From the NCBI GenBank assembly GCA_964057225.1, contig OZ059894.1, forward strand, positions 17,422,001-17,486,000: 64,000 nucleotides of DNA. Reading direction: 5' to 3'. The notes beneath the pieces are model-generated. The model made no database searches. It was not told where the DNA came from and saw nothing but the letters and a program-made list of their open reading frames with translations. Source of the DNA: Auanema rhodensis. Taxonomy: Eukaryota > Animalia > Nematoda. Made by a program: the position numbers and the translations under genes. Below, in pieces: positions 512 to 37,259 of the stretch. How positions within the stretch are numbered: the first letter of the stretch is position 1; every line of letters starts with the position of its first letter.

Positions 512-3500
512 ATGTTCTTTCGATATAAATTAAACCATAGCATATGTAGGAGATTTTGTGTTGATAATGTAAGCAGGTTAGAAAATGATTCTTGGTTTTA
601 TGTTCAATCATTTTGGTATTTAGATCATTCGATGTCGATTTAGTTAGTTCAAACTTCGCAAAAAGAACAGAATGGGCTTCAGCCAACTTTGGCAATTCAG
701 GTAACGGCATATTTCATGATAAAGTCATGTAATATTGTTTCCAGGAGCTCCATTTCGTATGGTTCTTCCTCCGCCAAATGTTACCGGAAAGTTACATATT
801 GGACATGCATTAACTGTAGTAGTTGAGGATTCAATTTGTAGGCATCATCGAGCGAAAGGAGGCGTTGTAATATTATATTTATTATGTGTTGCTTTATAAA
901 TCTTTAGGCTATATGGACACCTGGATTTGACCACGCTGGTATAGCTACTCAATCAGTTGTTGAAAGAGAGTTATGGAAGGCAGAAAAAAAATTACGACAT
1001 GATTTGAGTCGGGATGAATTTATATCGGAATGCAAAGCTTTTTCGACCAAGTATTTTATATTGAAACATATATATTTCATTATTCTTTTAAGAAATGCTG
1101 AAGTGATATCGTCTCAATTGAAACGCATGGGTGCTACATTAGATTGGGAAAATTCGTACTACACTTTAGATGATGTAAGCCTTTATATTTATAACATTGA
1201 ATTTATAATCACCGATTTGATAGAAATTCTCTTCTGCTGTAACGAGAGCCTTTGTCAGCCTTCATAAAGATAATAAAATATTCCGTGATAAAAGAATTGT
1301 TCAATGGTGTCCCCAGCTTCGAAGCTCTCTCTCTGATCAAGTAAGATAAGTTTTAAACTCAATTAGTGGGGAACAGAGTTAAGGAAGTTGAACGACTCGA
1401 TGTGGGTTCTGGAGAAGTTCTAACGATTAAAAAATCTGAAGGAGGTAGTAGATCAGTTAAGGTTGGGGTGATGCATAAAGTGAAATATATGGTGAAGGAT
1501 TCTCGTGACTGGTTAGCCAATTTGAAAATTCTTTTTATTTCAAATGTTTAGCTTAGAAGTGGGGACAACACGTCCTGAAACCTTATTTGCTGATGTTGCT
1601 CTAGCTGTGCATCCTTCCGATTCCAGATATTCAAAGTTTTATCTCGTAGTAATGCAATTACGTTTTGAAATTTTTTTAAGGTTTATTGGGAAGTTGGTGG
1701 AGCATCCTCTTATCGGTGGTCGCTTCATGCCTGTAATTGCTGATGAAAGCGTTAAAATGGATAAAGGAACCGGTAAAAGTTTAATAGCAATGCTTTCATG
1801 ATTTTTCAAATTAAGGAGTTGTAAAAATTACTCCTCATCACGATGGTCTAGACTTTGCAATTGCTTCAAGACATTGGGACGAAATTTCTTCTGTTGATCT
1901 TTCTAGCAAAAATAGGTTAGTTTTTACTTTATCACTTAGGCTGTAAAGTTTTTAAAAGCTTTAATATTCACGTTAATTCTAATTTTACATTATTCATCTG
2001 TAATTAGGGTATGTATGAATGAAGATGGGAAATTGATTAACGTACCTGATGAGTTCTTATTGATGGACAGGTTCGATGCTCGAGAAAAGGCATCTATAGT
2101 ATTTTTAAAAAATATATTCTATAATTCTTGAGGTGATTGAACATTTAACTGCTTCTAACCATTATGGAGGATGTTTAAAGCATGAAAATGCTCAGATAAG
2201 CATATGTTCCAGAACAGGTTATTCTTTTCTGTATGATATTATTTTAAAAATTTTCTATTTTTAGGAGATATTATCGAGCCCAGATTGACCGAGCAATGGT
2301 TTTTAGATACTAAAGATATGCACAAGGATGTTGAAGAAGCCTTGAAAAGAGGAGAAGTAACTATAATTTATTACAAACTTAATGAAATCCTTCAAAGATT
2401 AAAATTACTGCAAATTTCCATGAACAACGAATGATTGATTGGTTATCAAATGTTGAACCCTGGTGTTTAAGCCGTCAAGTTCTTTGGGGTCACCGTATTC
2501 CAGCCTATACCACGGATGGGTTTGTTATTATTTCTAACTGTGGGTTGAATACCTTTTCTTAGACTTAATTGGATTATATCAAATAGTTTGAACGAAGCTA
2601 AAGAAATACTCAAATCTGATAATGTGGTTCAAGATAATGATGTGCTTGATACGTGGTTCAGGTTAAGCACAATTTCGTTATTAATATATTACATGTCGCT
2701 TTGAATTTCAGTTCTTCTTTGGTCCCACTTGTTACTGCTGGATGGATGGATAATACTCTTGATAAAAATCAGCCACCGCTCCATGTCATGGAAACAGGAT
2801 GGGATATTCTTGGTTTCTGGGTTATTCGTATGCTTATGCTAACTCAAAAGTATCAATCATCCTTTTTTCGTTGAAGTACATGTCTATTCAGATTATCTGG
2901 TCAAGTAGCATTCCCTCAAATAGTTTTGCATGGACTTGTTAGAGATTCCAATGGTCGAAAAATGAGGTTTGCTCTTTTCTTTATACTATTGCGTATTGTT
3001 TCTTAGCAAGTCTCTGGGCAATGTGATTGATCCCATGGATGTTTTGAATGGAATTTCGCAAGAGAATATGATTATTCGCTTGAATGAAAGCTCTCTGGGA
3101 GCAAAAGAAAAAGGTATATTGTATTTTATAGATTCTTATCTAGTTTGTTTCAGAAGCCAGCATTTCTGAGATGAAAAAAAAACATCCAGATGGAATTCCA
3201 AAGTTTGGAGCTGATGCTTTAAGGTTTGCTTTATTGCGTCACGATGTGCTTTCAATGGATGTCCCCATCAATATAGTAGAAACAGCTGGAGAAGTATGTG
3301 AAATCCATAATTATGAACAGAATTATCACATGCTGAAATAGGGTTATCGCTTCTGCAATAAAGTTTGGAATTTGATCCAATATGCTGAATCAGTGAACGA
3401 CAAATGTAATTCAAGTAAAGAATTTGATACTGAACATCCTGCGGTAGTTTCACACTAACTTTGATTTTCTCAATATTTATTTTTTTAGGATTTGTGGATA

Positions 3501-4581
3501 CTTTCGAGATTAGCTGCTGTTTTGAAGGAAGTTGATGAGCATATGATGAATCATTCACCTCATATTGCTTTCACTACATTACAGAATTTCATTTTGTCTA
3601 ATATCTGTGATGTATATCTGGTTTGTGAATATCGTTCATAGACAATGTTTGAAAAATCTATACAGGAAGCTACAAAAAAAGATGTTTGGGATGAGTATTC
3701 TAAAAGAACTGAAGAAATCCGCTGTACATTGACTAGAGTGCTTCAACCTACTCTTGTACAACTATCTGTATTTATGCCATTTGTCTCTGAACATCTATAC
3801 GAACGGTTATTTAAAAGAGAAAAAGGTTCAATATATTTTGATTTTATTAAGGTAAATATTGTTTTCCCCTATATCATCATCATCATATATCTTATAGGCT
3901 TCGTATTTTCAATTACACAGAGATACGGATCTGGAAAAAACTATGAACTTAGTTTTATCTATTGTAACAGCAACTCGTTCCGTTCGTCAGCGTCTACAAA
4001 TGCCAGCTAAATTAGTTTTTGAAGGTTTGTAATGCTTTTCTCTCTCGTTAATTATTTGATTTTAGGAATTCTTTTCACAGATAAATATGAAATAGCTCAG
4101 ATGAATAAAGTTATTTCGGACTTAGGAAATATAAAAATTACAAAAATTTGTGATCTCAATGATGAAGTTCCGGCAGGATTCATGCCATCTTGTCTACCAG
4201 GATTTGATGATCGCTTAGCATTGAAAATTGAGGTACTTTCCAACCCATGAACGATTTATATACAAATTATTATGTTTTATAGGCCGAGCACCAAAACGAA
4301 TTTGTTGGAAGATTAGAAGGATTGCTAGCAAAGGCCGAAGAAAGACGAAAGCTTTTTGACTCGAAAGCAGAAAAATATGAGGAGATCGTCAAACGAGATG
4401 AAAAAGATGAAAAGGTTTGTTATTTGTTCATGTTTATCAATCTTATAACATATATGCGCAGGTTAAAAAGAATGTTTTGGAGAAATCAAAGAAGAAAGCG
4501 GCTCAAGCTAGAAAAGTTGCTCAATCAGCTGCAGTTGAAGCTGAACGAATAAAAGCATTACTATTAGAATTGAAGTTATAG
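512..4581 (+). CDS. vars-1: Valyl-tRNA synthetase, probably mitochondrial (multi-exon, >20 short introns)
   Basis: Spliced translation gives [21 protein letters not shown] (HIGH motif, ~753-815), [65 protein letters not shown], an intron-split KMSKS (2959-3012) and GADALRF. The N-terminus [15 protein letters not shown] is Arg-rich and presequence-like and follows the acceptor TGTTCAG (502-508). Stop TAG ends at 4581. The symbol is from recollection of the C. elegans mitochondrial ValRS that lies next to algn-12. Confidence 0.93.
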
Positions 4582-4680
4582 TAGTTACTAATTATTATAT
4601 TTCATTCGTGAATATAGAAAATTATTATTATTCATTATAGAGATTTTATTTTTGTTATATAGAAAAAACTGATTATGTTC

Positions 4681-4781
4681 AATAAATATATTCGATATGA
4701 AATATTTTTAAAGATCAAAATGGGTCTAAGACCTTGTACTTTATCATTCACAAAGTGATTCAAATATATATTATTGTTCAG
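4681..4781 (+). promoter_or_regulatory. Operon-type intercistronic region: AATAAA poly(A) signal followed ~90 nt later by a trans-splice acceptor
   Basis: AATAAA at 4681-4686; TTGTTCAG at 4774-4781 directly before the ALG12 ATG at 4784; both genes on the same strand. Confidence 0.65.
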
Positions 4782-4783
4782 AG

Positions 4784-6856
4784 ATGGACAATATAGAAGG
4801 AACAGAATGGCTGGTGTTAATAGCTATGATGGTTAACTTGCTTATGGCCCCAGGTACAAAAGTTGAGGTATTGAAATAAGAAGCAATAATACATTTTCTA
4901 AAATATTTGAATTAATTCAGGAAAGTTTTAATGTTCAAGCTACTCATGACCTGATATATCACACATATGACATTTCAAGCGTTAGTTATTATTTCATTTA
5001 GCAGTAATCATATACTTCAGTATGATCATAATGATTTTCCTGGAGTTGTTCCTAGAACATTCGCGGGCCCCCTGTATCTGTCTGCTTTTGGCATTCCCAT
5101 GAGACTCATCATGGCAATGTCTAACATTCCCAAGTTCTGGATGTTGTTCTTTAGTTAGTACTAGGTAATATTTTTAACTCTTATTCAAATTTCAGTACGT
5201 TTTATTCTTGGCACAACAACTGTGATAGCTTTTCTAAATTTTGCTCGTTGTATTCGAAAACATTTTGGCGAAGAATCTGCTACATTTCTGAGGTTTTTTT
5301 TCTTTTTCTATCTCACCAAACTTGTATGTTTTTCAGGATTATTATAGCCTCACAATTTCACTTTATGTTTTACTCTTCAAGAACTTTACCAAATACTTTT
5401 GCTTTAATTTGCGGTAAAAAATTGAATGTTTATATGTTCATCTTCTAAATTTTTCAATTTTAGTTTTGGTGGTTTATCAGAGAGTTTTGGATGAAAGATA
5501 TCAATCGGCTGTTCGATGGGCTACTACTGCCACCATTCTGTTCAGGTTTTTGATCTTCAATAAAACTAAAAATTAATTTTAGGAATTTTCAGATGCGAAC
5601 TTGTAGTTTTATTCGGACCTTTGTTCCTTCCAATTATCCTCAGTGGAAAACTTCCATTATTTGGTTCCGACGGTGCTCTCATAACCGGAATTAAATCCGC
5701 TGCAAAAGCTTTATGTAGGTTTCTAACTAAGTTCCGCTTGAATTTAAAAATGTTTAAGTTATCACTGTTCCAATAGATTCCCTTTTATGGGGTCGCCTGA
5801 TTTGGCCAGAAGCCGAAGTAGCTTGGTTTAATATTCTTTTGAACAAAAGTCAAGAGTACGGGGTTTGAACTCAGATATGCTGTATCTACTTTAAAAGCAA
5901 AGTTTTCAGGTTCAACCATTCTTTTGGTATTTCTATAGCGCTCTTCCCCGTGCTTTATTAGCTTCAACTGTGTTGATTATAATTGGTCCATTAGTAGACA
6001 GACGTTTAACGGCCCTGCTTATTCCATCCATCTCTTTCATCTTTCTATATAGCTTTTTGCCACATAAGGAATTAAGGTGTATTAAATATGACCTTAAACC
6101 CTTAACTCAAATTTCAGATTTATAATCTATGCATTCCCCATGCTCAATGTATCAGCAGCTGTATTTTGTGCTCGAATGTAAGGGATTTAGTTTGATGCAT
6201 TCAAAAATTTCCTTTGAAGGTACATCAATAGAAGTAAGTCTTGGTTACGTCTCTTCCTTTACTGGGGATGTGCCTTGCATATTATTGCCAACCTGCTAGC
6301 AACTTGTGTTTTCGTGTACACCGCCGCGAGAAACTACCCAGGAGGAGATGCTATTGGTCATCTACAGGTGTGAATTCTGTTTTTGAACTTTCATAGATGA
6401 ATCTTTTTTACAGTGGACTCAGCGTATTGATGCTAATAAGCCAATTTCTATGTATATTGATAACGCATGTGCTCAAACTGGTGTTAACCGATTCATGCAA
6501 CTCTATGATGCTTGGGAGTATGTAAAATTATATTATTTTTCCCAAACCTTTCCTTTAAAGGTATAACAAGACTGAAAACCTTAAACCTGAAGATATGGAG
6601 AGATTTGAGTTTCTACTTATTGGTACATACGGTACGAATTTGAAAGAGATGGTTATGGCAAACTATACTAAATGGCACAAAGTTATGTATGCTGTCCCAG
6701 CATTTCACAAATTCTCCTTCAGGTAGATTAAAGTTCAAAGTTATATGATCGTTTTGATATTTCTTTTTTTACAGAAAATCATCCCAATTCCCATATTATA
6801 TTCCTGAATTGGTAATGAAGGAAAAAGTTGCCGCTCTTCGAAAAAAATACGATTAA
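4784..6856 (+). CDS. algn-12: ALG12 Dol-P-Man:Man7GlcNAc2-PP-Dol alpha-1,6-mannosyltransferase (GT22 family), multi-exon
   Basis: Spliced translation contains [107 protein letters not shown] and YNKTE. The C-terminus RKKYD* is a KKxx ER-retrieval-like motif. Confidence 0.95.
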
Positions 6857-9800
6857 GTTATTTTATTGAAATTTATTTTATAACTTTTCTATTTTTGTAT
6901 TGAGTTTCATCGCTTATTTTGGGAAACATTCCGAACGATTAAACATGTCATCATATGATCTATTGTGTTTTACATGAACTGGCCCTCATATCAATGTAAA
7001 ACTGTTAAAAGGTCAGAGATATCAAATTTTGTTTCTCACGATGGAATTATATTGAATTACGTGTTGTAGTTTATACTAATCTAACATGCATATGCAATTC
7101 TACAGTGAAGATTTATCTCTTTTAGTACGAAAGTTAATACTTTACCCCATCATATACAACCGCTTCTTATTTAGCCGACAATGTAAATGAGCAATTTACG
7201 CAACACCCCACAGCCAAGTCTGTTGGTCACAGTAATGTCATATTGAGCATATGGTTCGACTAGATTGAGAATGAAATATTTCAATATTCAACTTCCTTTT
7301 TTTGAATTTTCAATTTCATTTCAAAAATATGTTCTATTCAGCCTCACGGATATGATTTGTCCAATTGTCAAGAGATATTCATCCTCGCAATCAACTTAGG
7401 CTGCTCTTCTTTTTAATGAAACGGAGGAAGTTCCTCATTCATCTCATAGGTAATATCAAATATTTTTATGAAACTAATTTCATTACATATTTGAAATATC
7501 ATTTCAATTTCATTATTGAGAGACTTGATTAAAGTGAAATTTGATATAAAACTAGAGAATATTGCGATTTATAGGATATTTTTAATTTTTTAAGTGGTCA
7601 TGTTATTTGTGCTAATGAGCTTCATTAATACGGACATTTTTTGTCAGGTTCCGGTTGAGTTAGCTGTTTACATACATACATTTATTGGAAATTAATGAAG
7701 GCAGTTAATTTCAATGATCAAAGTTGAACCATGTAGGTAAAATATACATTTTTCTATATATAATTATAGGAATCATACATTTGAGATTAGGTTAAGTTTT
7801 GCTATAAACATTTACAATTTTTATTCTTTTTTTTTCATAAAATAATGAAAGAAAGTTTTCATGAGTCATATGCTCAGAATCAATGCAATTATAATTATAT
7901 ATCCTTATTATAAATGTAATTTTCTTTCAAATTTAACATTAATTATGCTATTCAGCAAGAATACAAGTCGTTCACCGCATACTATATGAAGTATTTCACA
8001 AATAAAAGAAACATATTCAACTTTCTTTAAACAATTAAATATTTCCAATTTTTGTTATCATACTCATATATAATACATTCATATTATGCATATATATTCT
8101 TTTTAATTCCTTTTTTACTGATGGCTCATACACAATTAATTCATCTAATAAGGTGTTCAACCGATCAGATGCTAAGAGGTCAATACCAGCTCAGCAGGAT
8201 AGGTAACACCTGTCTTTAGAGCAATTAAGCTCAAATCTGCCGAAGTTATAATCCCCCCATGAGGAAACTCAGTCTCTGTTCCTAATATAAATGTCGTGTA
8301 ATTCATAGGTTTCTCGCCCGACTGCTTATCTGGCATTTCCGATCTTATCTACGGTTCTGAGCAATTCCGCATCTGTACCCCCCACTGAAAGCAACGCCTC
8401 TTATAAGCTGTATCTTAATGTGAGCTATGAGCCAATATAAGCATCTCATTGCTGCAAATCCCTACGAAGTATTAGTACCTGTTTGATATTCATTGAGGTG
8501 ACTGATTCTTCACCGTTGTATTTCCTTGGCATTATTTAGTCATGTGGAAGTCTCTGTGGATAAGACTGGCGGTTACAACTAGTAAATTTGTTTATTAACG
8601 AAATTCCTAAGAGAAATTAGCTATATGATAATATTATATAATTACTCTTGAGATGATTTATATGATATCTAAAATACTAAACGCTCTCTTGTGATGATTA
8701 TCATATAATAAACAAAATTTTCTATTGACACATAAATAAAGTTCTGTCAATCTCGATTTATAATCTATCATTCGACAGTAAGTTTTTTTGCAAATTGTTC
8801 ACATTTTCTAATTCCGAGTATAATTATTTGCAATAATTTTTATAATTTTTCGTATGACAATGTGTTATATTAGAATTGTATATTTTCAAATTTTCAATCG
8901 TATTTACGATATGAAAACATTGAATTCACATAAGGAAAGCAGTTCTAATTTGTACGGTTTGTCTCACCAAATTTCATTTTCCAAATTCGTTAAATTAATT
9001 TCCCTGGACATTATTTTGTATCTCTTCTCATCTAGCTATTGTTCTCTGTTTTTCTCACATTCTCATGTTTGCAACATTTGAGTCAAAGTAACAAAAACGT
9101 TGTGTAATCATATGAGTAATCAGCAATAACATTTTGCTCATAATCTAAGAATTTAGGTTATTCTTTCTTCTACCTTCAAAAATTATAAATTTTGGAAATG
9201 ACATAAACGTCATATTCGATTATAGAACTTGGAACTTGACGTAGATTTATCTAGTTTTCATAGTCTTTCAACCACAAAGGTGATTCCCTATACATGATTT
9301 CTCAAAACTTACCATGTTTTTGAATACATTTGGTTGGATTGTATGATTGCTGCTACGAGTTCAATTTCAATATTTTCCATTGAATACATTGAGATTATAT
9401 GATAGTTTCATCAAGCACAGCTTCTTTCGAAATAATTAAAATCATAAAGTATTTTAATTAATTATACAATTAAATTTTATTAAAAATCTATTCAAATATT
9501 AACTAACACGACTATTTTTATATATTGTTCCTTTTTTTTATTTCAGTAGCCTTTATGCTTTCTTTAATTATTCTTCAATTAAGTATTGATTGAGCTAATG
9601 AGTTCACAAAATATGTTAATTAAATCTTTCTATATATGGAAAATGATGACGTTTAATGAGCATTTTCTCAGTTTCCAATAAATAATTAAAAGGAATAAAC
9701 ATGAGATTCTTCTGCTTCTTCCTCATTCTCGTAATTATTTTATAAAAATAATCATTTCGTTTTCATTTTCTTTTTTCAACTGATTTAGTTTTTTTTTTTT

Positions 9801-10436
9801 GAAAAATATAATTTATTACTACTGTTTTAAAGCTTATTAATGTATTCTATTAATTTATATAAGATATAAATTAAATAGAAAAAAAACTAATTAAATTATA
9901 ATGATAATGATAATTATATAATATAATTTCCTTTTTATAATTGCTACATTAGTTTTGATTTATCTCCTTTTGAATGATTAAGCAATGAGCTAACCAGCAA
10001 TGTTCCAATTTTTCTTTGAATTTTGATTCTTTCGATATATGATATACGTGTAATACTATGCATGTATTATGAACCTAATTATGCCTAATTAAATTTATTT
10101 TTAAATAAAATATAATTAAATGTATTAATAAGTCCAATTTGTGATAAATAATATCATGATTACAAGAATTTTTCATTTTAATTTAGTCAATTTAATTGCA
10201 TTGTTGCCCACATCATGAATAAATATAAAAAGAATATATGATTCATTTAGATTAATTAGAAACCCACGTGCATGTGAAATCAAAATTGCAACTCTTGATC
10301 CCCCATCTCTCTATCTTTCTCTTGCTTGCTCTCCCTCTCAGCTCATTTCTGTTTTCGAAGTCGTACAGAGAGGTTGTATATCATAATATTTGCCTAATTA
10401 GCTTCATTAATATTATTTCATTTGATTATAAACATT

Positions 10437-10443
<7 letters not shown>

Positions 10444-10469
<26 letters not shown>
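10444..10469. repeat. (TA)n microsatellite
   Basis: Perfect TA dinucleotide run. Confidence 0.9.
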
Positions 10470-10476
<7 letters not shown>

Positions 10477-13400
10477 GAAAAATATGTATAAGTATGTATA
10501 TATAGATAATATTATGATTCATTAAAGATTTATTTCATCATCTTTATGAATTGTATTTTGATTTATCACCTATTACTATATAAATATATGTATGATACTA
10601 TATATATTTTAAACTTTTGTTTTAACCTAAATTTTATATGAACAATTCTAAATCATTTCATCGTCATTTCAATAACATTTCCAATTGTTGAGGCATTTAG
10701 TTTTTTTTCTCTGAGCCATCTCTTGCGAGTCATGCACATCATACCTGACTCAGTGTGATCGAAAAAGTAATCTGAACATAAATCATTCCTAACTCTCAGA
10801 AAAAAGTCAACTTCTTATTGTTTATCTTATTGAAAACCTGTCGGCTACTCATTTGAGAATTTTTTTTTCTTGCCTCATTGGTAGCAGATCTCCATTCTTT
10901 TTTTTTTGCAAAGAAAAACTATGAAAATAGAAATGTGAGTCAAGACACTGATCATACAATAAGTAGCATTTGCCGTTTTCTTCTATTTAACGTTCTTCCT
11001 TTTTCACACAATGACGATAAAATATGGAATATTTTGGATAGCAATGAAATAGTTTTTTTCTTGTTTTATCACTATTTAACGAGCTTTTAATTATTTTTTT
11101 AGTAAAAGAAAAAAATATTTCGAACTAATTGCTCTATTTTGCTATTTGGTATACATGAGATATGCTGTACAATGCTGTAACTTAAGTTGTGGACAGTTTT
11201 TTTTTACTGAAGGATACATCAATTCTATAGTGTGAACTTTGATATTTTCGTAATTTTGCCTATTTTTCTCGTGAATTGAATGTGTTGAATCTTCAATCTA
11301 TCCCCTTTTTGGGCTAGAATTTTCATCATTTGATCCAAAGATCATCAAATTCTTGATGAGCAATGTTTAAGACTAAAATAGCAGATGTTACAACCTATTT
11401 CAGAATATCATAAAATTATAGTAAAATTTTATTTGCTCTAATGAAAATTCACGTGTAAATGACTCATACATATACAAAAATATTCGATGAAAGTTTTGAA
11501 AACACACTCTATGACATCATCTATGGTCAGCTTAATTATGTTTCATCCTTATTGCCCCATTAATATGTGCACGGAACGAAAGCAACATTTAACTTTCCTT
11601 TTATGTTTTTTCCGCTTTTCGAACTTTGCCATCATAAGCCATGTTCATTATTCAGAGCATGAGAACTGCAGTTGAATGCTGGACATAAGCTTAAGCTCAA
11701 ACCTTCATTTAATCACTCGAAGTCATAAATTTGAAGTCGATTCAAATATAAAAGCTTTTGCTAATACTTAAGCTGAAACCAAAAAATTTTATTTTAAAGA
11801 TCTAACGTTATTCGAAATCTGAATGTATTATTCCAATCTTCCAGCTATTCCGTAACATTAATGATCATTTTCCTTAATCAACAGCCAGCGCGAATCAATC
11901 GTCCGAACTTTATTCAATGGTGTTTCCTTGCAAATTCGAAGACGTAATTGAATAATCGCTATTATTAAAGATATTATAGATAAGGTTCTTTGATTTGTAA
12001 ACAATTAATATATCAAATACAAAATTTGTTATCTCGATAGTATTCAATTTTACTATTTTACTTAGTTCTTATCTTATACTTATTCTATTCAACTTTTATC
12101 TTTTATCTTTGCTTCATTCTTTGTGGTTAATTAAATTTAAAAAAAAATTATATTATGTAATCTTTAATTAATTTATATAAATATATATTACGTATAGAAA
12201 ATCTAATAATATACAATATGAAGTTTTTGCAAGTTTTCTTCCTCCAAATTCTCATTATTGTCTTCTATACTCTAATAAAATGTTCCTTGTTTTTTGATCA
12301 TGCTGTTCAGCCATCTAATGAGCTTTTCTTGGATTTTTATTCGTTTCCACACATTCATGACTCATTGATAGCTTAAGACCATATCAAGGAGGCTTCTCTC
12401 TTCTCACCGGCATCATTGTTTGGTAAACTCTTATGGCTTCTTCACAATCCATTTGATCCATTTTACACCCTCAAGTATTTTACTATATAATATTTATATA
12501 TATATATTTATATATATATATATATACATAGTTATGTATATGTATATAAATATAAATTTCAAGACAAGATATAATCATCATTACTTTAATGTTTTCAAAT
12601 ACAAGAAACAATTTGCGTAGTTTAACGTTTCGTTTTTTTATAATCTCCATTTTATCTTTCTTATTTATCTTGTCTTTGTTAGCACTTTTTCAGAAAAAAA
12701 ACTAAACATACTTTTCAACTTTTATTTGTAAAATCTTTCAAATATTCAATACTTTATATGATTTGAGCACTTTTTTTGGATGTTTCTAAAATGGAATATG
12801 AGTTTCATTTGAACAGATGCATGTTCACAAACGCTTCAATAAACTTTGCAACCTTTTTCTTGAATTTAAACATAATAAACATTGTAATATTAATTTAGAT
12901 CATAATTTCTTTTTTAGAATCATATTCATATTCTAATTTTTTCTTTTTTTAACTCAAATCTTATTAAATAAATAAATTTTGCTATTATTATCTGATCAAC
13001 TTTTAATAATAGTTAAAATGATTCAGAATGAAAAAAATATATAGAATGATGATTTATTCCTATTTAACATTTTATTTTTATTTTATAAGCCATTTAATAT
13101 CGGATAATCTTGCATTTTTTTTTTTTATCATATATCATGGTACTTTTCTTTGTTTTTTTCCATTTTTCACTAATCTTAATACCTTTTCTTTTAAATATCA
13201 TAATATACGTATATCAAGATCCTTTTTATATAATTATCTCATGAATTATATCTTTTTCTTACGAAAAGGACTAAAGATGAACTTGAATAACTTGGTGACA
13301 TTTCGATAAAAAATCTTTTATTATGATTTTTTTGATAGAATTTGTTTTTATCATGCAATATAATCACTTTTAATTACAAAAGACGTCGTAATCAGTATAT

Positions 13401-27557: not shown

Positions 27558-29723
27558 TTTTTTTTGATCGTTTTGAGAATTTTCATTTGTTAATATCAGG
27601 ATGTGAATATAATCCAGAATTTTAAATTTTAAATTATATTTTTACTACCTACATGTACATAAACTATGATTTCAAAGAAAATAAAATATATTTGTGATGA
27701 TAAAGTATTAATTTTTAATTTTTTTTAAAATTTTTATTGAAATATTTTGGGATTGGGAGAATAAAATTTGAAGAACTTTTTGTTTTTCATGTTTTATAAA
27801 GTTTATTCATCATATACATATATGTATAGTATGTATATAAACACAATCGTATTGTTGTTTTCTTCATAACTGAATCAAAGGTTATTTTTTTATTTTTTTA
27901 AACTTTAATCTTGAACTTGTATTCCCTTAAGAACATATATATATAAACTAAAAAATATATGATATAACTATATAGTATGTTGTTATATGTATATATGAAT
28001 AACAAAAACTTATTTTTTGTCCTTTTTTTTTCTTGTAACTTTGATGCAACTTCACCGCATTTGATGAACGAAATATAGGACAACCAACAGTGTCCTCAGT
28101 CTTTCTAATCTATTGAGGTTTTAATGTAGAAAATGAATCAAAGTTGAAATTCAAATTGTCAGAAAAAAAAAGAGAAATGTGAATTATTTATGGAATTTAA
28201 ATGATCTCATCTTTTAACTATTGAACATACATACATATATAAATATTTCTACAACTAATTAAAATAAGAAAATTGCTGAAAGAAGTGCAGATACATGGAT
28301 AGTTTTTGATTTTCTTTCTCAATTTCAGAATATTTTCCATAAAATGAACGCAAAAATTCATTTTTTTTATTTCTGAAAAGGACAAAGATATAACTTGAAG
28401 AGAAAATTTCATCTGAAATTAAGATTGTAAAATCGAAGTGTATAAAGCGATACTTTGACTTAATTTTTTATGGATATATTCAAAGTTTATTTGAAAAAAC
28501 GTTGGCAGAAGTTTTACAAGGTACTTAAATGCCTTCTGATACTTGGAGTTCAAATGATTCTTTGTCAGATTGTTAACCATTTATTACCGAACGACAACAT
28601 TTATGACATTTCGTAGCTCAGATTTCAACTATCAGAGGTTTATGAGATACATATTTGTTGAATATCGATGATCAAAAATCGATTATACAATTTAATTGTT
28701 AAATTTATTAATAAACTATATAATAATATATGAAATAGTTTATATATTTATTTAAAAATGTTAAAAACATATACAATTTAACAAAATTAGATAAAACCTA
28801 TCTATAGTGAATTCGATTTGAAATGCAAGATTTGACCTTTAAAACTTTAATTCGTTTCTTTCTTCAAATTCAATTTAATTCAAAGAAAAAATCAGAACAA
28901 ACAATATGAAAACGGATTATCTAAACGTAAATAATTCTTTTTTCAAAAGAAAACTTTATGGAAAATCCCAGTTTAATCACATAATGTTAAAAGAAAAAAT
29001 TGGTTTTAGCATCATTTCATTGAATAAGCGTGTTGTATTTCAATTTAAAAAACTGTCGTATAACTATAATAAAATTAAAAAAATTGAAATTATTGGATAA
29101 ATATATGTTTGAAAACAAAACAAAAAAAAGGGAATCTTTGAAATATTTTTTTTTATTTTAATTTATCATTTTGATATAAAATTATTATTCAACCGCATTG
29201 TTTGTCTGTTTTGTGAAAATGAAATTTCACGTAAATTTAGACGGAAATCTTTTAATCAACTTCAAGCTTCACGTTTTTTGAAAGTTTTTAAAAAGTTTCT
29301 TATATTTATAATTCATCAAATACTTCAAATTCTTTTTTTGAAACAAAGGCAATCAGAAAACGAGTTAGTTTAACCGTTCATTTCAAGCAAATTCTACACC
29401 TCAAAGTTGAAAATGGAAGATTCTTTCCATTCTCTCTGACGAGTTTGTCCTCTTGTTTCAACATTATTCTCTCATTTTCCTTTTTGTGACTGTTTCTCTC
29501 TCTTTTACTTAGTTATATGGCTATGTAATCGCCAAAACTGAAGCATCTACTTGTAGTCTCAATGTCCAAATGTCTTAAAAACGTCTTAAAAAGGTCTCAG
29601 CCCCACCCAGGAAATCAACCACTTTCCTTCAAAGGTATTGAAGAAGAAGAGTAAGGCAGTAGTAGACGTATTGAGCAGTAAGATACGGTCGTCAACTATT
29701 CTATTCCATTCAATTTCAAAGTT

Positions 29724-32700
29724 ATGTGGGTTATATCTATTTTAGGTGAAGTTCTTCTATTTATAATTTGTTATAAACTATTTATTTATAGTTTTATTAT
29801 GCTTTCCAAACTATGTTCTAGCTTTAGACTGTAAATCAGCCAACAGAGGAAGAATACAAGTAATTTTTCTTTTAACTTAAATTTATAAATTTTTATTTTA
29901 ATTATCAAAAATTTTATATAAAATCTTAATGTTATAGTGGTATTTTGATCCATCTCATTGGACATGCTTTGCTTATCCAGTTGATTGTAATACAAATTTT
30001 AATGTTGAATTTAAACTTTATAATACCGAAGAAGAATGTACATTGAAGAATATGGGTTAGTAAAATATTTTAACTATACGTATAATAAAATTATAACTTA
30101 TAGTTAGATTATGGAAAACATATACATTGAGTTGTGGTCCATATCAACGTATGGCAGTATATGAACGATCAAATGTTTGATTATACTTGAATTGAATTTT
30201 TAAAAAAAAAATTTTATTTAGGGTGATCATATTCCTTATATATTTTCTTCGTCATTATGTCATTCGGATTCTAGTTCAGATATATGTAATAATAATGAAA
30301 CTTGTATGTCATTTAATGGTTTTGCTTATTGCTGTGGAAATACTGCTTTTCAAGGAAATGGGCCAAGTATCAATATATTCTTCTAATTATTATTCTATAA
30401 TATTAATATTAAGCTAGAGGAATTTTTAATTTTACTGGTGTAGGAGGAAAATCCAAATATATTTTACAAAAAGCTTCAACAGAAGCTCCAGTACCAGCTC
30501 CAAGAGATTGTAATACTGATGGAGATCGAAAAGAAATAGAAGTAACAGCTTTCCTTCGTCTCATTTCTTTTATATTATTGTATTCTATAGTGGTACCCAA
30601 ATGGTAAAATGATGTGTTTAAGTCGAAGAAAAGTTTGTTCAACACCCCAATTTGGAAGAGAAATAGTGAATGTTACATATAATACTCAACAAGAATGTAT
30701 GGATGCTCATTTTCGTATGTTTTAGCTTTTTTTAATTTATAGAAAAATAAAATTTGTTATAGCTAATTGGAAGATGTCATATCGATTAACTTGTTCGCCA
30801 GGATACTCAGCCGCTAAACAGGATGCAGCACTTATCTTCAGGTAATATTTTGAATTCAAATTATATATGTATTGATTAATTTTTTTTGTTGTTATAACAA
30901 AAATCTTGAAACATTAGAAGAATATATACAAAAATTTCATTTGTTATTACCATAGACATTAAGATTTGTCAAGACATTGGGTGTATCTGATATGAAAATT
31001 GAGAAATTTATTCTTCCTCTTCTTCTTCTTCATATTCCTCTTCATATGCCTTGGCTTCAGCAGCCTGAAAAAGAGATTTTTTGAAAATTGTTTTCGTTTC
31101 AAATTTTGAAAAAATTATAATTTCTTTATGAAATTATTTTGAATTATTGAAAGCATACTTCTAATTCTTCCTGAATTTCATGGGCATATTTTGCTATCAC
31201 CTTCTCGAACAAAGTGGGTGGAGGTGGAAGTCCAGGGAACACGGGGTAGGCATTTTTCTAAAAATGCCATGTTAGATATACTTCTGTAATTTGGAACATA
31301 CAGTTTCAAAGACCATTCTGCGTTCCTTGAAGTTTCTTCTATCAATTTGACGATCATACTTGGAGGAAATTTGGACTTTTGGCTGAAAATATGATATTTC
31401 AAAAAAAATTCGTGTTGGTTATGCTAACTGGATATCTTCCGCCGGTATCATCTGGATTTTGTCCAGTCTTCAGGTTATTACGAGCAACTTGACGAGAACG
31501 TTCATTCAACTCACGAAGCTGAAACAAATATTAAATAGATTTTACTCAAAGTTAAAAACTAACATCGTATTCTTGTCTTTCGTGTCTCTTCTCTTGATCG
31601 TATTTCTCAGCCTCGAGCTTACAAATTCTCTGATGAAGCTCTTTGATCTTGGCCTTGAGTTCTGATGCAGCAAAAGCACTGCTCACGGGAATGCTTTTCT
31701 CGATAGTTTGTATGATAGCCTTGAAAAAAATTATAATTGTCTTTAAAAAGCTCATTTCACTTACTCTCTTGGCTTCTTCTTGCTGTTCCTTGGTCATACC
31801 CATTTCTTGTTTAGCTTGAACAATATTTCCAAATTTGTCTCCCTTGTCAGATTTACGTTCAATGACAAAGTTTCTAAAAAAAAGATTTGAAAATGATTTA
31901 TGAGTTTAGCACCCTACCTTCCTCCTTGGCCAGCTGGAACTCCGAAAGCAGCTTCAGCTTTCTTCTTCTTTTCTTCCTCCTTCTTCTTCTTTTCCTCTTC
32001 CATTTTCTGTCTGCGAGCTTCCTATGAAATAATTATTTTAAATATAAAAGAAACTTTAAGTTCTAACCTCCTCATATCGTCTTTTCTCTTCTTCAGCCTT
32101 TTTCTTCTCTTGAGCTTCACGTTCTTCTTGCTCTCTTTCCTGACGACGCTTCTCCTGCTTCTCCTTCAGCTTGCGAAGCTCTTCCTCTTCCTAATAAATA
32201 GCAATTGTTAACATACGTTATGTTTTTTTATATATTTCTACCTTTCCTCTTTCCATCTTTCTTCTCTCTTCGTAATCCATCAGTTTGGCCTCATCGTCAT
32301 TATCGTGACGCTTCTTGGCAGCCTACAGCATACTTGTGTAAACGTATTCATCTTCAAAACCTACCAGCATGGCTTTTTCAGCTTCATTGAGATCTTCTCC
32401 ACCTTCACGAGCAGCACTGAAATTTCTAAATTTTAATTATAAGTAATCTCGTTCTTCTGTTAAGAGTTGTAGCTTAAACGTTAGCGATGCAATTCATTGA
32501 TTAGGTTGTATGTGGAATGTAGCGTAACTGTAATGTTTCAAGCTGTTCAAAGCATGATTATCTAATTATTAAGCCTTAACAATGTTTTTAATTAGTAATT
32601 ATTATGAAAAAAGACAGTTAAGCTGTTTCTTTACTTCTTTTGCAAAAGATGAAAGGGTTGATTATTTGAGAATTATCAAAAATTCTTGTTTTCTTCTCCG

Positions 32701-34708
32701 TAGTTTTGAGAAATCAAGATATTTCTAAGCCAGGTTGAGACATAGCGATGATTCCCATCGACTTGAAGCTCTCGAACTGTATGGCAGAAGAAAGATCAGA
32801 ACAAACATGCAAGGAGAGAGGAAAACATACAAAGCGGACAGAAGATTCGCACTCTCTGAGTTCTCTGAATTCCTCTCTCGTAATCATTCTTTTTCTTTAA
32901 CCCTCTTGCTTGTTTCCTTTTTTAATTCTTAATCTCTTTTTCTCTCTTTTTCTTCAACATATGTTATTTCTCATCCCTCTCGCTCCGTCTCTCTCTCTCA
33001 TGCTTTCTCTCGATCTTTCTCAATCTTTTAAAATTGTTATCATGAATAATTAATAGCAAAAAAGTAATTTTATAGGAGAAGCAGGTTAAAAAGCGTAAAA
33101 AGGCAAAGGGAATGGGTAACATTAAATAATGCTTAGACTACGGTATCTAAGATGAAAAAAATGCGTGTCGATATAGTGCGGGTGCTGAACGAAATGTGTG
33201 TGCTCACCGTCGTGGAGGACTGCAAATAAGAACCTACAGACTATCAGCTTAAGCTTCAAAGCTTGAGCTCATAAAAGGATAAGAATCCATTAAAATAATT
33301 CTTCTTATTAAATACTATACAAATTTGTGCAAATTATAATAAGTGATAACTAATTTGGGAGTGAAAGATTTGAAAAATAAAAATATATTTTGAAAAATAA
33401 AATAAAAATGTTGTAACTTAAAAACGTACGCTTCTTCTTCTTCCTCTTCCTCTTCTTCTTCTTCTTCCTCAGCTGGATCTTCTACTACTTCTTCAACCTC
33501 AGCCTCGGCTTCTTCCTCGATCTCCTCCTCTTCCTCGTACTCGGAACTGAAAGTTTCAAGTTTTTGATTAATAGTTTTCTCTTATAAATCCAAATATTCA
33601 AATTCTTATAAATGATTGAAACAGAATACTCACTATTCCTCGTCGGACATGGCTTTGGCTGAAAAAAAAACCAAATCAAAATTCCAAAAAAAATACGAAA
33701 ATATAAGAAAAATTTATGAGAAAGTCATGCTTTTTCACAAAAAAATTAACAAAGTCAGCTTCTTGCTGATAAACTCTTAGAAAATTGGAAGAGCAACTGA
33801 ACAGAATCTGCAACAAAGCTTAGTGTAGACTGTTGAGAGCTGACTGTTTCATATGCGTAGGCCGACTGAAGCAGGACAGTGAAGGACGGAAGATAAGAGA
33901 GATATAAGAAAAAGAGGTAAGAGTGATAGAAGAAATGAAAGAGGAAGTGTGGAAGATGAACGAGTGAAGCTCAGACTGAATGAAAGAATTATGAGGTTCG
34001 AGACAGGCTTCACTCCTCCCCGTATCCCCTCCTCCTCCACTTCGTTCTCGACGTCGTATACGAAGGCGATATGTTGAGTGCTCCGCACTGTTTGTTTTTC
34101 TAGATCTGCCAGAATCTGAATCTCACCTCATGAAACATTTCTTCGAAAAATCTCTCAGGATTAAGCTCTTTCTAATTATCTTTCATACTTAAAATCTCTC
34201 ACACATCTACACTATTCGAACAGTTTATATCTTCCAATCCACTTTCTCTCCTTTACTATCGTATTGGTCTCTAATCTTCGCCATGCCAATGGAACTTCTT
34301 CTAATCGTGTTCTTCTCTCATCCAGTAGCTGGATATGATTGGGATGTCTCTTCTGTGTTCAGGGGAATAATTGAATTTAGTTTCAATAGAAAAATGAATA
34401 TAAATTATATTTTTATCAATCTATATATACACATATCACATACAAAAGCATTTATTTTTAATTTTCAGTAAAGATAAATGTGGTTCTATGCATCATTCAG
34501 ATGTTTGTAATAGAGATGAATATTGTGCTTACAAGAGTTCTTCACCATTTGCTTTCTGCTGTAAGCGAAGTTCAGATTCCTGTACGTTTCTGAATCTTTT
34601 TTTAAAAAAATTATATTTGTCATCATTCTAGATGTGATCTCATATGTTGTTTATGGAAAAAATTATCGAAGACGTATCAGACGTCAAGCTGCAACAGTTG
34701 AAATTTAA
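29724..34708 (+). CDS. Uncharacterised secreted Cys-rich protein, ~314 aa, with two tandem [degenerate Kunitz-like + lustrin/WR1-like] units; host of the nested troponin T gene
   Basis: Exons 29724-29745, 29792-29859, 29938-30055, 30104-30174, 30222-30366, 30414-30541, 30591-30714, 30763-30841, 34469-34581 and 34632-34708 total 945 nt with no internal stop. Signal peptide MWVISILVLLCFPNYVLA. Unit 1 IFSSSLCHSDSSSDICNNNETCMSFNGFAYCC aligns with unit 2 IFSKDKCGSMHHSDVCNRDEYCAYKSSSPFAFCC. Confidence 0.8.
31008..33650 (-). CDS. tnt-4: Troponin T (most similar in my recollection to the tnt-4 type), multi-exon
   Basis: Spliced translation: MSDEEYSEYEEEE (acidic N-terminus), [117 protein letters not shown], poly-E tail. 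Family call is firm; paralogue assignment is less certain. Confidence 0.93.
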
Positions 34709-35283
34709 CATTTTCTTGAGTAAACATATGTTTTTTTTATAATTGTGAATATATTTCTTTCTAATTTTATTATTATTTTTTAAATTAAAATATAAAAATT
34801 ATTATCGAATCCGTTTATTTGTGTGAGCGCGAGATCATTTCAACGAACGTACGTGGAACGATACCGAAAAAAAGAAAAAAAACTTATAAAAATGAAAACA
34901 AAGAAGAAAAAAAAGAAAACACAACTACATACAGACATATATAGTCAAATAATAAGCTTAGAACCTATAAATACAACACCGGAATTCTTATTTCCTTAGA
35001 AGTAAAGGAAGGCTTTCATTAAATGTTTCCTACAGAAGAGAAAAAAACATTTTTTTTCAATATGAATAGTTAAATCTCAAAGTTAAATCCGGTTATTACG
35101 TACAAATTCTATTGAAATATGAATATTATTATATTTTTTTATAATTTAAATAATTTTTTTTGTTTGAAAACAAGAAATATGCAAGATATGTATGCCATAT
35201 AGATATCTCAGAACAGATAAAGTTAAGCTTTTTTCTTAAATCAAAAAGCTTTTTTGATTAAAAAGATGGAAAAATAAAAAAAT

Positions 35284-37259
35284 TTAATTGAACAACCAGA
35301 AGAGAGCTGGTCGAGGTGATTGAGGTTGTTGGCGTGGTGGTATTTGTACTAAAGGCTGAATACATTTACAATCATGAAGGAAAATATTTCCGAAGTCGTG
35401 ACATCGTCCACACCTGTAATTAGGAAATTCTCATAGTTTTCTTCAATTTTTTTTGCATTTATCATAACAATAATATTATTATTTAATACTAACCATCCTA
35501 AAGAAAATACATCTTTACATGTATTTGTAAGCCAATCAAAACTACAACCAAGTTGCTCCAATGATGAGTTGGCTGCTTGACCGTTAATTACCTAAATAGA
35601 CCAAATATATAAAAAAATATATTTAATATGTCTTAATAATGATCTAAACTCAATACTTACCTCAAACCGGTTTTCTGGTTGCGGAGGTGGTGGAGGTGGC
35701 GGTGGTGGAGCTATAGGTGGAGTAATTGGTGTTCCTAGACCATTTGCAAGATTATTTGGCACAAGCTGAAAGAATCGAACAAATTAATATATAGTCTTGA
35801 ATTATATTCTCACAGCAGTTGGAAGATTAGCTGGTGGCGGTAACATTGGTGGACTCAGATTTCCAATTCCTGTTAATTGAGGAAGTTGGCCCGTTAACTA
35901 AAATTTGCGTTATGTACTATATTACTTGATTATTTCAACAAACTTGAGGTGGAGGCCCAGCAGTTTGTACATCTTTAGTTGCACCCGGTTGTGGAACTTG
36001 TGGTACTGGAAGGAAGAGCTGACCAGCTTGTTGAAGTGGCGATGGTTGTGGAGGAGGTAAAGGAGGAGGCATACCACTCAAACCAATGTTTGGAATTATA
36101 CGATTAGGAATAACTGGTTGATTCTTAAATATAATTTTTTAATAAAATTGGATTTGAAGAGCAGAACAACTACATTAGTAGCTTGTCCAATAACTGTTTG
36201 AGCAAATGTTCTTGTTGTTGATGGTGCACGAGATAAGAGCATTGGCTGTACAAAAGCTGGAGGTGGTTGCTTGAATTCATGTCGCTCTTCTGTTATAGAT
36301 GATACAATAGGCTGATTCTAGAAAAACAATTATATTGATTATATGATGAATATATGTATTTTTACTTTAGCTGGTGAAGCTGTTGTTGGAATAGGCATTG
36401 GAGTTGTTTTCTGAATAATAATATCTTCTGTTTTAACAGCTACAGTTGTTCTTTCCATGCTTCTAGCATACTGCAAATAAATATTTAAATTTTATAAAAT
36501 AATATCAAATAAACCTCATTAGCTTCTGTCATTGTCAGATTATCTTCAGATAATTTATTTCCATGATGTTTATCCTCATCATAATTATAAGATATAATTT
36601 GAACAGATTCTGAAATATATAAGAAAATCGTTTTTAATTTCCATCAATAAAACGTTTAAACAACTTTTTCCGTGAAGTTCAGCATATTTAGATAGTTACG
36701 TGAAACATTTGAACGTCAGAAATAACCGTAAACTCTCATTTTATTTCGAAAAACGAAAATGAACGGTTGAATGTTTTTCATTTTTTTCAGTTTTTATAGA
36801 AATTCAAACGATGTTTAAGAAATTTTCTTATAAATTCAATAAATTATCAGATGTTTACCTGGTTTTTGAACTGCTAACTCATGAATAGGTACAGCTTGTG
36901 CTCTCTTTGTAAATCTACCAGAAGCTCTATATAACCTAGGTTCATCTATAATAATTTTAATAAATAAAATTAGAAAATACAAATATTAAACCACTGCTGA
37001 ACGATGCAATATGTTGAACATTTCTGAATACTCTTGATCTTAAAGGTCTCGAATAAGATGGAAATGTAGGCGAACTTCGTAGAATTCGTCTATATGCTGG
37101 GTATGAAGCTGCTTCTACATATATTTGGCCATTATATGCCTTTTCTTGTGCAAAACTCTAAAATATTGAATAAGGAATACTTAACAGTGATTAATCAAAA
37201 TATACATTTCCAGCTGCTTCGATTTGGCATACAAGCCATGCCACAAGGAATATCCTCAT
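35284..37259 (-). CDS. Uncharacterised secreted proline-rich protein with C-terminal 6-Cys module, 11 exons
   Basis: Signal peptide MRIFLVAWLVCQIEAA after TTTTCAG. In-frame GT-AG exons give a Pro/Gln-rich middle (MPPPLPPPQP, APPPPPPPPPQP) and the C-terminus GCSFDWLTNTCKDVFSLGWCGRCHDFGNIFLHDCKCIQP...LFWLFN*. Confidence 0.82.

Follow-up and report, generated by a model that had tools for sequence, protein, structure and literature searches.

Does the host gene on the + strand of this locus, whose first eight exons end at position 30841, resume 3.6 kb downstream on the far side of a troponin T gene carried by the opposite strand? We addressed this question in a window of 64,000 nucleotides of Auanema rhodensis DNA (the whole stretch analyzed, to which all positions refer). 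The locus is very probably a genuine nested pair of genes on opposite strands, from a rhabditid (clade V-like) nematode, with a 12-exon troponin T gene lying in the old intron 8 of a 10-exon host.

The host gene (29724-34708, + strand) consists of 10 exons in two blocks, 29724-30841 and 34469-34708, which together encode a 314-aa secreted product (Table 1). This product is built from two homologous units, in each of which a divergent Kunitz-like segment precedes a beta-rich five-Cys module, and its MW start is common to the orthologues P0010 and P0014. An alternative start of exon 6 at 30444 (304 aa) was rejected, as the orthologues lead to 30414 instead, which gives 314 aa and regains two invariant residues. 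Intron 8 measures 3,627 nt, against 46-78 nt for the remaining eight host introns. The next in-phase acceptor after exon 8 is aattttcag, ending at 34468, and exons 9 and 10 beyond it have intact splice sites, an intact 50-nt intron and a frame closed by TAA. The initial annotation had described eight exons at 29724-30841, a phase-2 donor at 30842 with a matching acceptor at 34468, a 314-aa product and otherwise short introns, all of which are borne out on the sequence.

Table 1. Features of the host gene and of the troponin T gene inside its intron 8, in window coordinates
Feature	Position	Strand	Basis
Host exon 1: ATG, first part of signal peptide (MWVISIL)	29724..29745	+	sequence
Host exon 2: remaining signal peptide, first unit-1 Cys	29792..29859	+	GT-AG, phase 1 to phase 0
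Host exon 3: unit-1 Kunitz-like segment (WYFD...C...C...EEC)	29938..30055	+	32% identity with exon 7; orthologues map here
Host exon 4: unit 1	30104..30174	+	pairs with exon 8; orthologues map here
Host exon 5: unit-1 five-Cys module (C-x8-C-x5-C-x8-CC)	30222..30366	+	40-44% identity with exon 9
Host exon 6: linker, first unit-2 Cys	30414..30541	+	orthologue alignments begin at 30413
Host exon 7: unit-2 Kunitz-like segment	30591..30714	+	similarity to exon 3; orthologue mapping
Host exon 8: ends ..AALIF + AG, phase 2, donor TTCAG/GTAATA	30763..30841	+	sequence
Host intron 8: phase 2, 3,627 nt; encloses complete troponin T coding gene	30842..34468	+	
Host exon 9: unit-2 five-Cys module (SKDKC...HHSDVCNRDEYC...FAFCC)	34469..34581	+	exon-5 similarity, orthologue mapping
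Host exon 10: basic C-terminal tail, TAA stop	34632..34708	+	P0012 residues 303-327 map to 34634-34705
Troponin T exons 1-6	33650-33634, 33546-33430, 32416-32365, 32322-32242, 32190-32068, 32021-31918	-	
Troponin T exons 7-12	31873-31765, 31719-31564, 31518-31429, 31382-31302, 31257-31159, 31064-31008	-	
Likely trans-splice acceptor by troponin T ATG, tttttttcag/CCAAAGCC	33651..33665	-	consensus
Presumed troponin T outron and promoter, inside host intron 8, GC 0.36	33666..34468	-	position
Candidate troponin T poly(A) signal AATGAA	30941-30936	-	consensus, position

The proposal that 34469-34708 completes a second copy of unit 1 is now backed by repeat scores, orthologue collinearity and invariant residues. 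First, aligning unit 1 with unit 2 gave a score of 123, against 30 +/- 5 (maximum 64) in 2,000 shuffles, while the part encoded by exons 9-10 by itself scored 68, against 27 +/- 5 (maximum 53) in 5,000 shuffles. The repeat is not due to chance, and it is collinear across the proposed 30841/34469 junction. When exon 5 was searched against the 181-Mb genome, the sole match besides itself was exon 9 (E 0.039, 44% identity), which is single-copy in the genome. Additionally, a profile built from exons 5 and 9 matched six protein clusters, four of which contain two copies of the module within 266-312 aa.

Second, collinear mapping across the troponin gene is seen for orthologues from strongylids, Pristionchus, Mesorhabditis and Gnathostoma. 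Orthologues recovered at full length (316-328 aa) come from A. duodenale, N. americanus, H. contortus, T. colubriformis, N. brasiliensis, C. nassatus and P. pacificus. With no exons joined, the hookworm orthologue P0012 aligned with the genomic DNA at 29938-30839 (residues 39-263), 34458-34574 (residues 261-299) and 34634-34705 (residues 303-327, which include its last residue), so that the host stop lines up with the end of the orthologue. The joined host model aligned with P0012 from residue 1 to 314 at 49% identity (E 3e-110). Among family-invariant residues 31 of 33 are kept in the host, including all 11 that fall in exons 9-10, as are 30 of 34 nearly invariant ones. Exon 9 shares 51-68% identity with three strongylid-type orthologues and 43% with P. 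pacificus, and is conserved no less than most other host exons.

Third, the junction itself has counterparts in other species. Four strongylid orthologues have an intron at exactly the host intron 8 position, after ..L(I/V)F, ranging from 64 nt to 7.3 kb. P0001, from another species, derives from six contigs of RNA type, about 1.1-1.3 kb long, whose ORF is uninterrupted; one of them starts with the 3' end of SL1. These mRNA contigs span the same junction as ..PLIFSKTLCGS.., following the host pattern ..LIF-SK..C. Orthologue collinearity, the conserved intron position, the spliced mRNA of a related species and the retained invariant residues thus support the structural reading, in which exons 9-10 are predicted to be part of the host gene and to complete unit 2. 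We infer that the 30841-to-34469 junction is used in Auanema rhodensis, and word searches of the protein set returned neither a full nor a truncated host protein from its genome.

The whole troponin T coding sequence (33650-31008, minus strand) lies within host intron 8 on the opposite strand, in 12 exons that are all GT-AG, with a closed frame of 361 aa; the antisense placement within a single host intron (30842-34468) that was originally assigned to it stands. Its exon 8 alone scored 26.1 bits against Pfam PF00992 (cut-off 26.2, E 1.1e-5, profile positions 35-79). Among solved structures the twelve best matches (E 0.003-0.03) are all troponin T chains, with troponin I chains ranking below by a small margin, and the translation has Glu-rich N- and C-terminal ends. 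The tnt-4 label used initially is tentative. The genome contains at least five troponin-T-like loci, and the best conserved exon of the nested gene shares 61-64% identity with four other loci, all on another contig. The genome contains no other close copy of the nested paralogue. The label 'highly expressed' may apply, judging by codon bias (GC3 0.385 vs 0.161).

Both ends of the troponin T gene may also be accommodated in the intron. The sequence tttttttcag is located 8 nt before the ATG, and by its likeness to the C. elegans trans-splice consensus it is presumably used as an acceptor. The promoter presumably also lies within host intron 8, where the distance from the ATG to host exon 9 is 818 nt, in keeping with the roughly 800 bp of upstream DNA first estimated. 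The AATGAA previously noted near 30936 is present as a candidate poly(A) signal. It lies 67 nt beyond the troponin T stop, at a distance of 95 nt from host exon 8, and from 31007 to 30842 the minus strand has no other poly(A)-type hexamer.

In the nested-pair reading, intron 8 would be an old intron, at a position common to strongylid orthologues, that in this lineage gained a complete troponin T gene along with its probable trans-splice acceptor, some 800 nt of DNA upstream and a brief 3' end. The full host protein would then need transcription of its pre-mRNA through the troponin gene and splicing of 30841 to 34469. Reading through the exon 8 donor unspliced gives R and then TAA, and retention of intron 8 would close the frame immediately, leaving 252 aa from which the last Cys module is lost. 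Transcription of either gene may also affect the other, and the transcriptional interference or mutually exclusive expression first suggested would be possible forms of this.

Conservation of the nesting in related nematodes had been suggested as a check, and it did not hold: troponin T is absent from the orthologous host locus in all seven other nematodes examined. The nesting therefore arose in the Auanema rhodensis lineage, and the insertion could be recent; a host put out of action only lately would not yet show it in its sequence. This is one reason to weigh the improbable alternative that the host now stops after exon 8, its transcripts either terminating or retaining the intron (..ALIF-R-stop, 252 aa), and that exons 9-10 are leftovers cut off when troponin arrived, since a lineage-specific nesting may be young and the host frame closes right past the exon 8 donor. 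P0006, a public model of another species, also stops at the intron 8 position, but that ending is a gene-finder read-through of the intron and is no evidence of a protein. What we see in exons 9-10 speaks against this alternative, with intact splice sites around a 50-nt intron, a stop aligned with the last residue of the orthologue, 11 of 11 invariant residues and an exon 9 that ranks with the best conserved. Furthermore, no canonical poly(A) signal was found on the + strand after exon 8, the sole poly(A)-type hexamer from 30842 to 31100 being TATGAA at 30991.

Misplacement of the 3.6-kb troponin segment between host exons 8 and 9 during assembly is very unlikely. The one point in its favor, an indirect one, is that none of the other species examined has the arrangement. 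There are zero N runs in 29000-36000, the contig exceeds 17 Mb within a 112-contig assembly, and the intron borders have only low-complexity matches and no long repeats able to mislead an assembler. The troponin segment also fits exactly in one intron and disturbs neither gene. It is scarcely credible that exons 9-10 constitute a small gene of their own with an independent start, although they sit within an open frame of 75 codons (34404-34628). This frame has no ATG ahead of the Cys module and would miss a signal peptide, and no 41-131 aa protein in a 5.8-billion-protein set shares words with it, so that no short stand-alone protein model exists. The corresponding stretch forms the C-terminus of a two-unit protein in all orthologues.

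A repeat search of the intron 8 borders gave low-complexity matches only, with neither target-site duplication nor terminal repeats, and Rfam had no match on 29000-36000. A Phosphodiest gene adjoins the orthologue in two strongylids, and its nearest copy here is 757 kb off, which makes synteny uninformative. We regard as possible, if rather doubtful, that an old, essential-type muscle gene moved whole, and solely in this lineage, into an intron that a gene for an unrelated secreted protein already had, and that through convergent transcription the two genes may now constrain each other's expression. If true, the pair together with the genomes of close relatives would provide a datable natural case of the origin of nesting and of its cost to the host.

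The host protein had been called unrecognised, which is upheld as far as Pfam is concerned and needs revision as to the fold. No Pfam family was found for the host exons at E <= 10, or for eight orthologues (seven full-length, one without part of unit 1) at E <= 1, including PF00014. Kunitz/BPTI domains have six conserved cysteines forming three disulfides, and their fold combines a beta hairpin with a C-terminal helix. In each host unit the Kunitz-like segment contains four cysteines, three of them encoded by exon 3 or 7 and the remaining one by exon 2 or 6, and so differs from PF00014 in cysteine number as well as in lacking a profile match. The predicted structure of P0012 (pLDDT 78.5) has strands at 37-42 and 47-52 and a helix at 69-76. 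With model residues 27-79, equivalent to the host exon 3 region, about 20 Kunitz chains top the list at Z 5.1-3.1, below the safe level of the tool; the alignments cover 39-48 residues, except for one two-domain chain with 67. The predicted-structure clusters nearest to P0012 consist of Kunitz proteins and include two from nematodes, and in UniRef one hookworm fragment of the host family is labelled a BPTI/Kunitz protein. A Foldseek search of the PDB with the complete two-unit model gave only meaningless antibody matches (TM about 0.14) and was set aside. Part of the predicted fold of P0012 resembles a Kunitz domain, with protease inhibition as a putative activity; the extracellular-matrix role first proposed for the host is likewise putative.

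The host family occurs in hookworms, trichostrongyles, Pristionchus, Mesorhabditis and a spirurid, and a family-profile word search gave no new members and no Caenorhabditis member. The main text of a hookworm cell atlas paper does not mention the locus tag of the orthologue. The analysis thereby brings to light an unnamed secreted two-unit nematode family (P0012, P0010, P0008 and relatives) with a Kunitz-like part and no Pfam entry. Known Kunitz/BPTI proteins include nematode combinations of Kunitz and Lustrin_cystein modules; in the host, each unit adds a beta-rich five-Cys module.

The locus also matters for annotation, as the last two host exons lie 3.6 kb away past another gene and automatic models are likely to shorten the protein. 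The prediction that gene finders would split the host is supported by analogy, public models of the family often being cut short in several other species, among them P0006 at intron 8. Troponin T genes of nematodes include C. elegans mup-2/tnt-1 and paralogues (PMC2120761), which the nested gene resembles in its Glu-rich ends and in having troponin T chains as its best structural relatives by sequence, along with its near-cut-off troponin family score. Nested antisense pairs are common in nematodes, with 567 opposite nested protein-coding pairs in C. elegans (WS290; PMC12274878), and the arrangement alone is therefore unsurprising; the layout, though real, belongs to an ordinary class of nested genes. 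It resembles ceh-10 inside polq-1 of C. elegans in that a complete gene sits in a single intron on the other strand and the coding sequences do not overlap. ceh-10 is nested in polq-1 in all nematodes analyzed in that study (PMC12274878), whereas the host/troponin T pair is missing from seven of seven orthologous loci, and with seven other species free of the nesting it could serve to study how such arrangements form.

Ten + strand exons close a single reading frame for the host gene (see table). Across the window the DNA is AT-rich and eukaryotic, its GT-AG introns are short, and the acceptors are of the TTTTCAG type. The product has 314 amino acids, the same length as in the initial annotation. 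For exon 6, the acceptor attaag at 30413 was adopted because orthologue alignments begin at 30413, which rules out a start at 30444 (304-aa product). Eight of the nine host introns span 46-78 nt, and intron 8 (30842-34468, phase 2) spans 3,627 nt. Inside it lies troponin T, with 12 GT-AG exons running from 33650 to 31008 on the - strand and encoding 361 amino acids that are Glu-rich at both ends. The layout first proposed, a troponin T gene nested antisense in one host intron, was confirmed on the sequence.

Positions of host exons, intron-8 equivalents and further troponin-T-like loci
Feature	Location	Strand	Length or remark
Host exon 1	29724-29745	+	
Host exon 2	29792-29859	+	
Host exon 3	29938-30055	+	
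Host exon 4	30104-30174	+	
Host exon 5	30222-30366	+	
Host exon 6	30414-30541	+	
Host exon 7	30591-30714	+	
Host exon 8	30763-30841	+	
Host exon 9	34469-34581	+	
Host exon 10	34632-34708	+	
Intron-8 equivalent	A. duodenale		64 nt
Intron-8 equivalent	C. nassatus		431 nt
Intron-8 equivalent	H. contortus (L012)		4,789 nt; ~7.3 kb in second tandem copy; no called gene inside
Intron-8 equivalent	T. colubriformis		present, same place
Troponin-T-like locus	C8:9214458-9214583	-	
Troponin-T-like locus	C8:9217952-9218077	+	
Troponin-T-like locus	C8:9183973-9184095		
Troponin-T-like locus	C8:5710747-5710878		

Six lines of evidence support assigning the distal exons 9-10 to the host. The protein is an internal duplication, in which exon pairs 3/7, 4/8 and 5/9 share 32%, 32% and 40% identity. 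Unit 1 aligns with unit 2 collinearly through the proposed junction (score 123 versus 30 +/- 5 for shuffles), and the exons 9-10 portion by itself scores 68 versus 27 +/- 5. Across the 181-Mb assembly (112 contigs), exon 5 matches only exon 5 and exon 9, and exon 9 is single-copy. Orthologues map collinearly onto the window without any exon joining: in the hookworm protein P0012, residues 39-263 fall on 29938-30839, residues 261-299 on 34458-34574, and residues 303-327, ending at the last residue, on 34634-34705. The source of another orthologue, P0001, is a set of six contigs (1.1-1.3 kb) that were assembled from another species' sequencing runs. The ORF is uninterrupted in each and one contig starts with CAAGTTTGAG, the sequence with which the SL1 leader of nematodes ends; the contigs are therefore spliced mRNAs, and over the equivalent of the 30841-34469 junction they give ..PLIFSKTLCGS... 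Of 33 family-invariant residues the host retains 31, and none of the 11 that fall in exons 9-10 is lost. In comparisons with three strongylid-type orthologues, exon 9 shows 51-68% identity (43% with P. pacificus), and it is conserved at least as well as most other host exons. Collinear orthologue mapping, the shared intron position, the related species' mRNAs and the retained residues bear out the earlier proposal that exons 9-10 complete a second copy of the unit, and the predicted nested pair is well supported by this comparative evidence.

Pfam returned no family in the host exons or in eight orthologues. The AlphaFold model of P0012 (mean pLDDT 78.5) is mainly beta, with a hairpin and helix at residues 27-79. 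In an exhaustive structural search, the list of matches to these residues was headed by about 20 different Kunitz chains, at modest Z of 5.1-3.1; alignments cover 39-48 residues, except for one two-domain chain (67). Among predicted structures, too, the nearest clusters consist of Kunitz proteins, and two of these clusters are of nematode origin. Because the scores are modest and the host segment has four cysteines instead of the six of Kunitz proteins, we describe it as Kunitz-like but leave it out of PF00014. The hydrophobic N-terminus ending ..VLA and the 21 cysteines of the translation are both in keeping with secretion; any role in the matrix is speculative.

The remaining line of evidence for the distal exons is a profile built from exons 5 and 9: in a set of 1.84 billion representative proteins it hit six clusters, and in four of these, two module copies occur within 266-312 aa. 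Starting from one of the clusters, a word search brought in further strongylid proteins that are full-length (316-327 aa). Family sources are Ancylostoma, Necator, Haemonchus, Trichostrongylus, Nippostrongylus, Cylicocyclus, Pristionchus, Mesorhabditis and Gnathostoma. Public models are often cut or split: P0006 ends at the equivalent of intron 8 with ten read-through residues, A. ceylanicum Y032_0001g453 (P0005, P0018) has the two units as separate products, and two trichostrongyle models (P0016, P0019) go wrong past intron 7. In L006, the SL1-bearing RNA contig of the related species, positions 1-10 are the end of the SL1 leader. The true frame there (region 125-215) opens with an ATG that precedes the called first residue, and it gains a signal peptide (MATKIAVLL..). 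The H. contortus locus L012 carries two tandem host-orthologue copies (754-12191 and 77230-90376), ~78 kb apart and separated by bestrophin and Phosphodiest genes.

With orthologues mapped exactly onto their own loci, ..L(I/V)F is followed by an intron in four strongylids, just where host intron 8 lies; in P. pacificus and M. belari introns lie a few codons off, and G. spinigerum has none at this position. The shared position and differing lengths indicate that the intron is older than the nesting and widely variable in length. The initial annotation asked whether the nesting is conserved in related nematodes: tblastn of the troponin model found no match in any of the seven orthologous loci (10-94 kb each). 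This absence is real, since the same search recovers own-genome paralogues at E 1e-11 to 1e-34. The origin of the nesting therefore falls within the A. rhodensis lineage. The borders of intron 8 carry no insertion footprints. The four further troponin-T-like loci, all on contig 8, are 61-64% identical in the best exon, and thus the nested copy is an old paralogue, not a fresh duplicate. The loci at C8:9214458-9214583 and C8:9217952-9218077, 3.4 kb apart in opposite orientation with identical tblastn statistics, look like a near-identical inverted duplicate.

The best conserved troponin T exon, taken singly, scores 26.1 bits against Pfam Troponin (cut-off 26.2), and the solved chains nearest by sequence are troponin T, with troponin I ranking below. 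A tttttttcag acceptor lies 8 nt upstream of the ATG, and AATGAA at 30941-30936 is the sole poly(A)-type hexamer downstream. The ATG stands 818 nt from host exon 9, an interval that probably holds the gene's own control region. Codon bias is stronger in troponin T than in the host (GC3 0.385 versus 0.161; Lys AAG 29 and AAA 15 versus 4 and 13), which suggests, by analogy with C. elegans, that troponin T is the more highly expressed. Its intron 2 (32417-33429, -) measures 1,013 nt, the other ten 42-94 nt, and includes a CT-rich, GC-richer block at ~32700-33250. Neither an Rfam match nor an open frame resembling troponin is present in this intron, which might contain a control element or alternative exon.

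The host is most likely transcribed through the troponin gene and spliced over it. Were intron 8 splicing to fail, the host frame would end one codon later, as the unspliced exon 8 donor (30842-30847) reads AGG TAA; any intron-retaining transcript would encode 252 aa, without only the last five-Cys module and tail. The opposite nested arrangement as such is common: C. elegans has 567 such pairs, whose co-expression is on average below that of neighbouring genes that are not nested, and induction of the host by its nested gene can occur there (PMC12274878). New here are the lineage-specific nesting and the unnamed Kunitz-like family.
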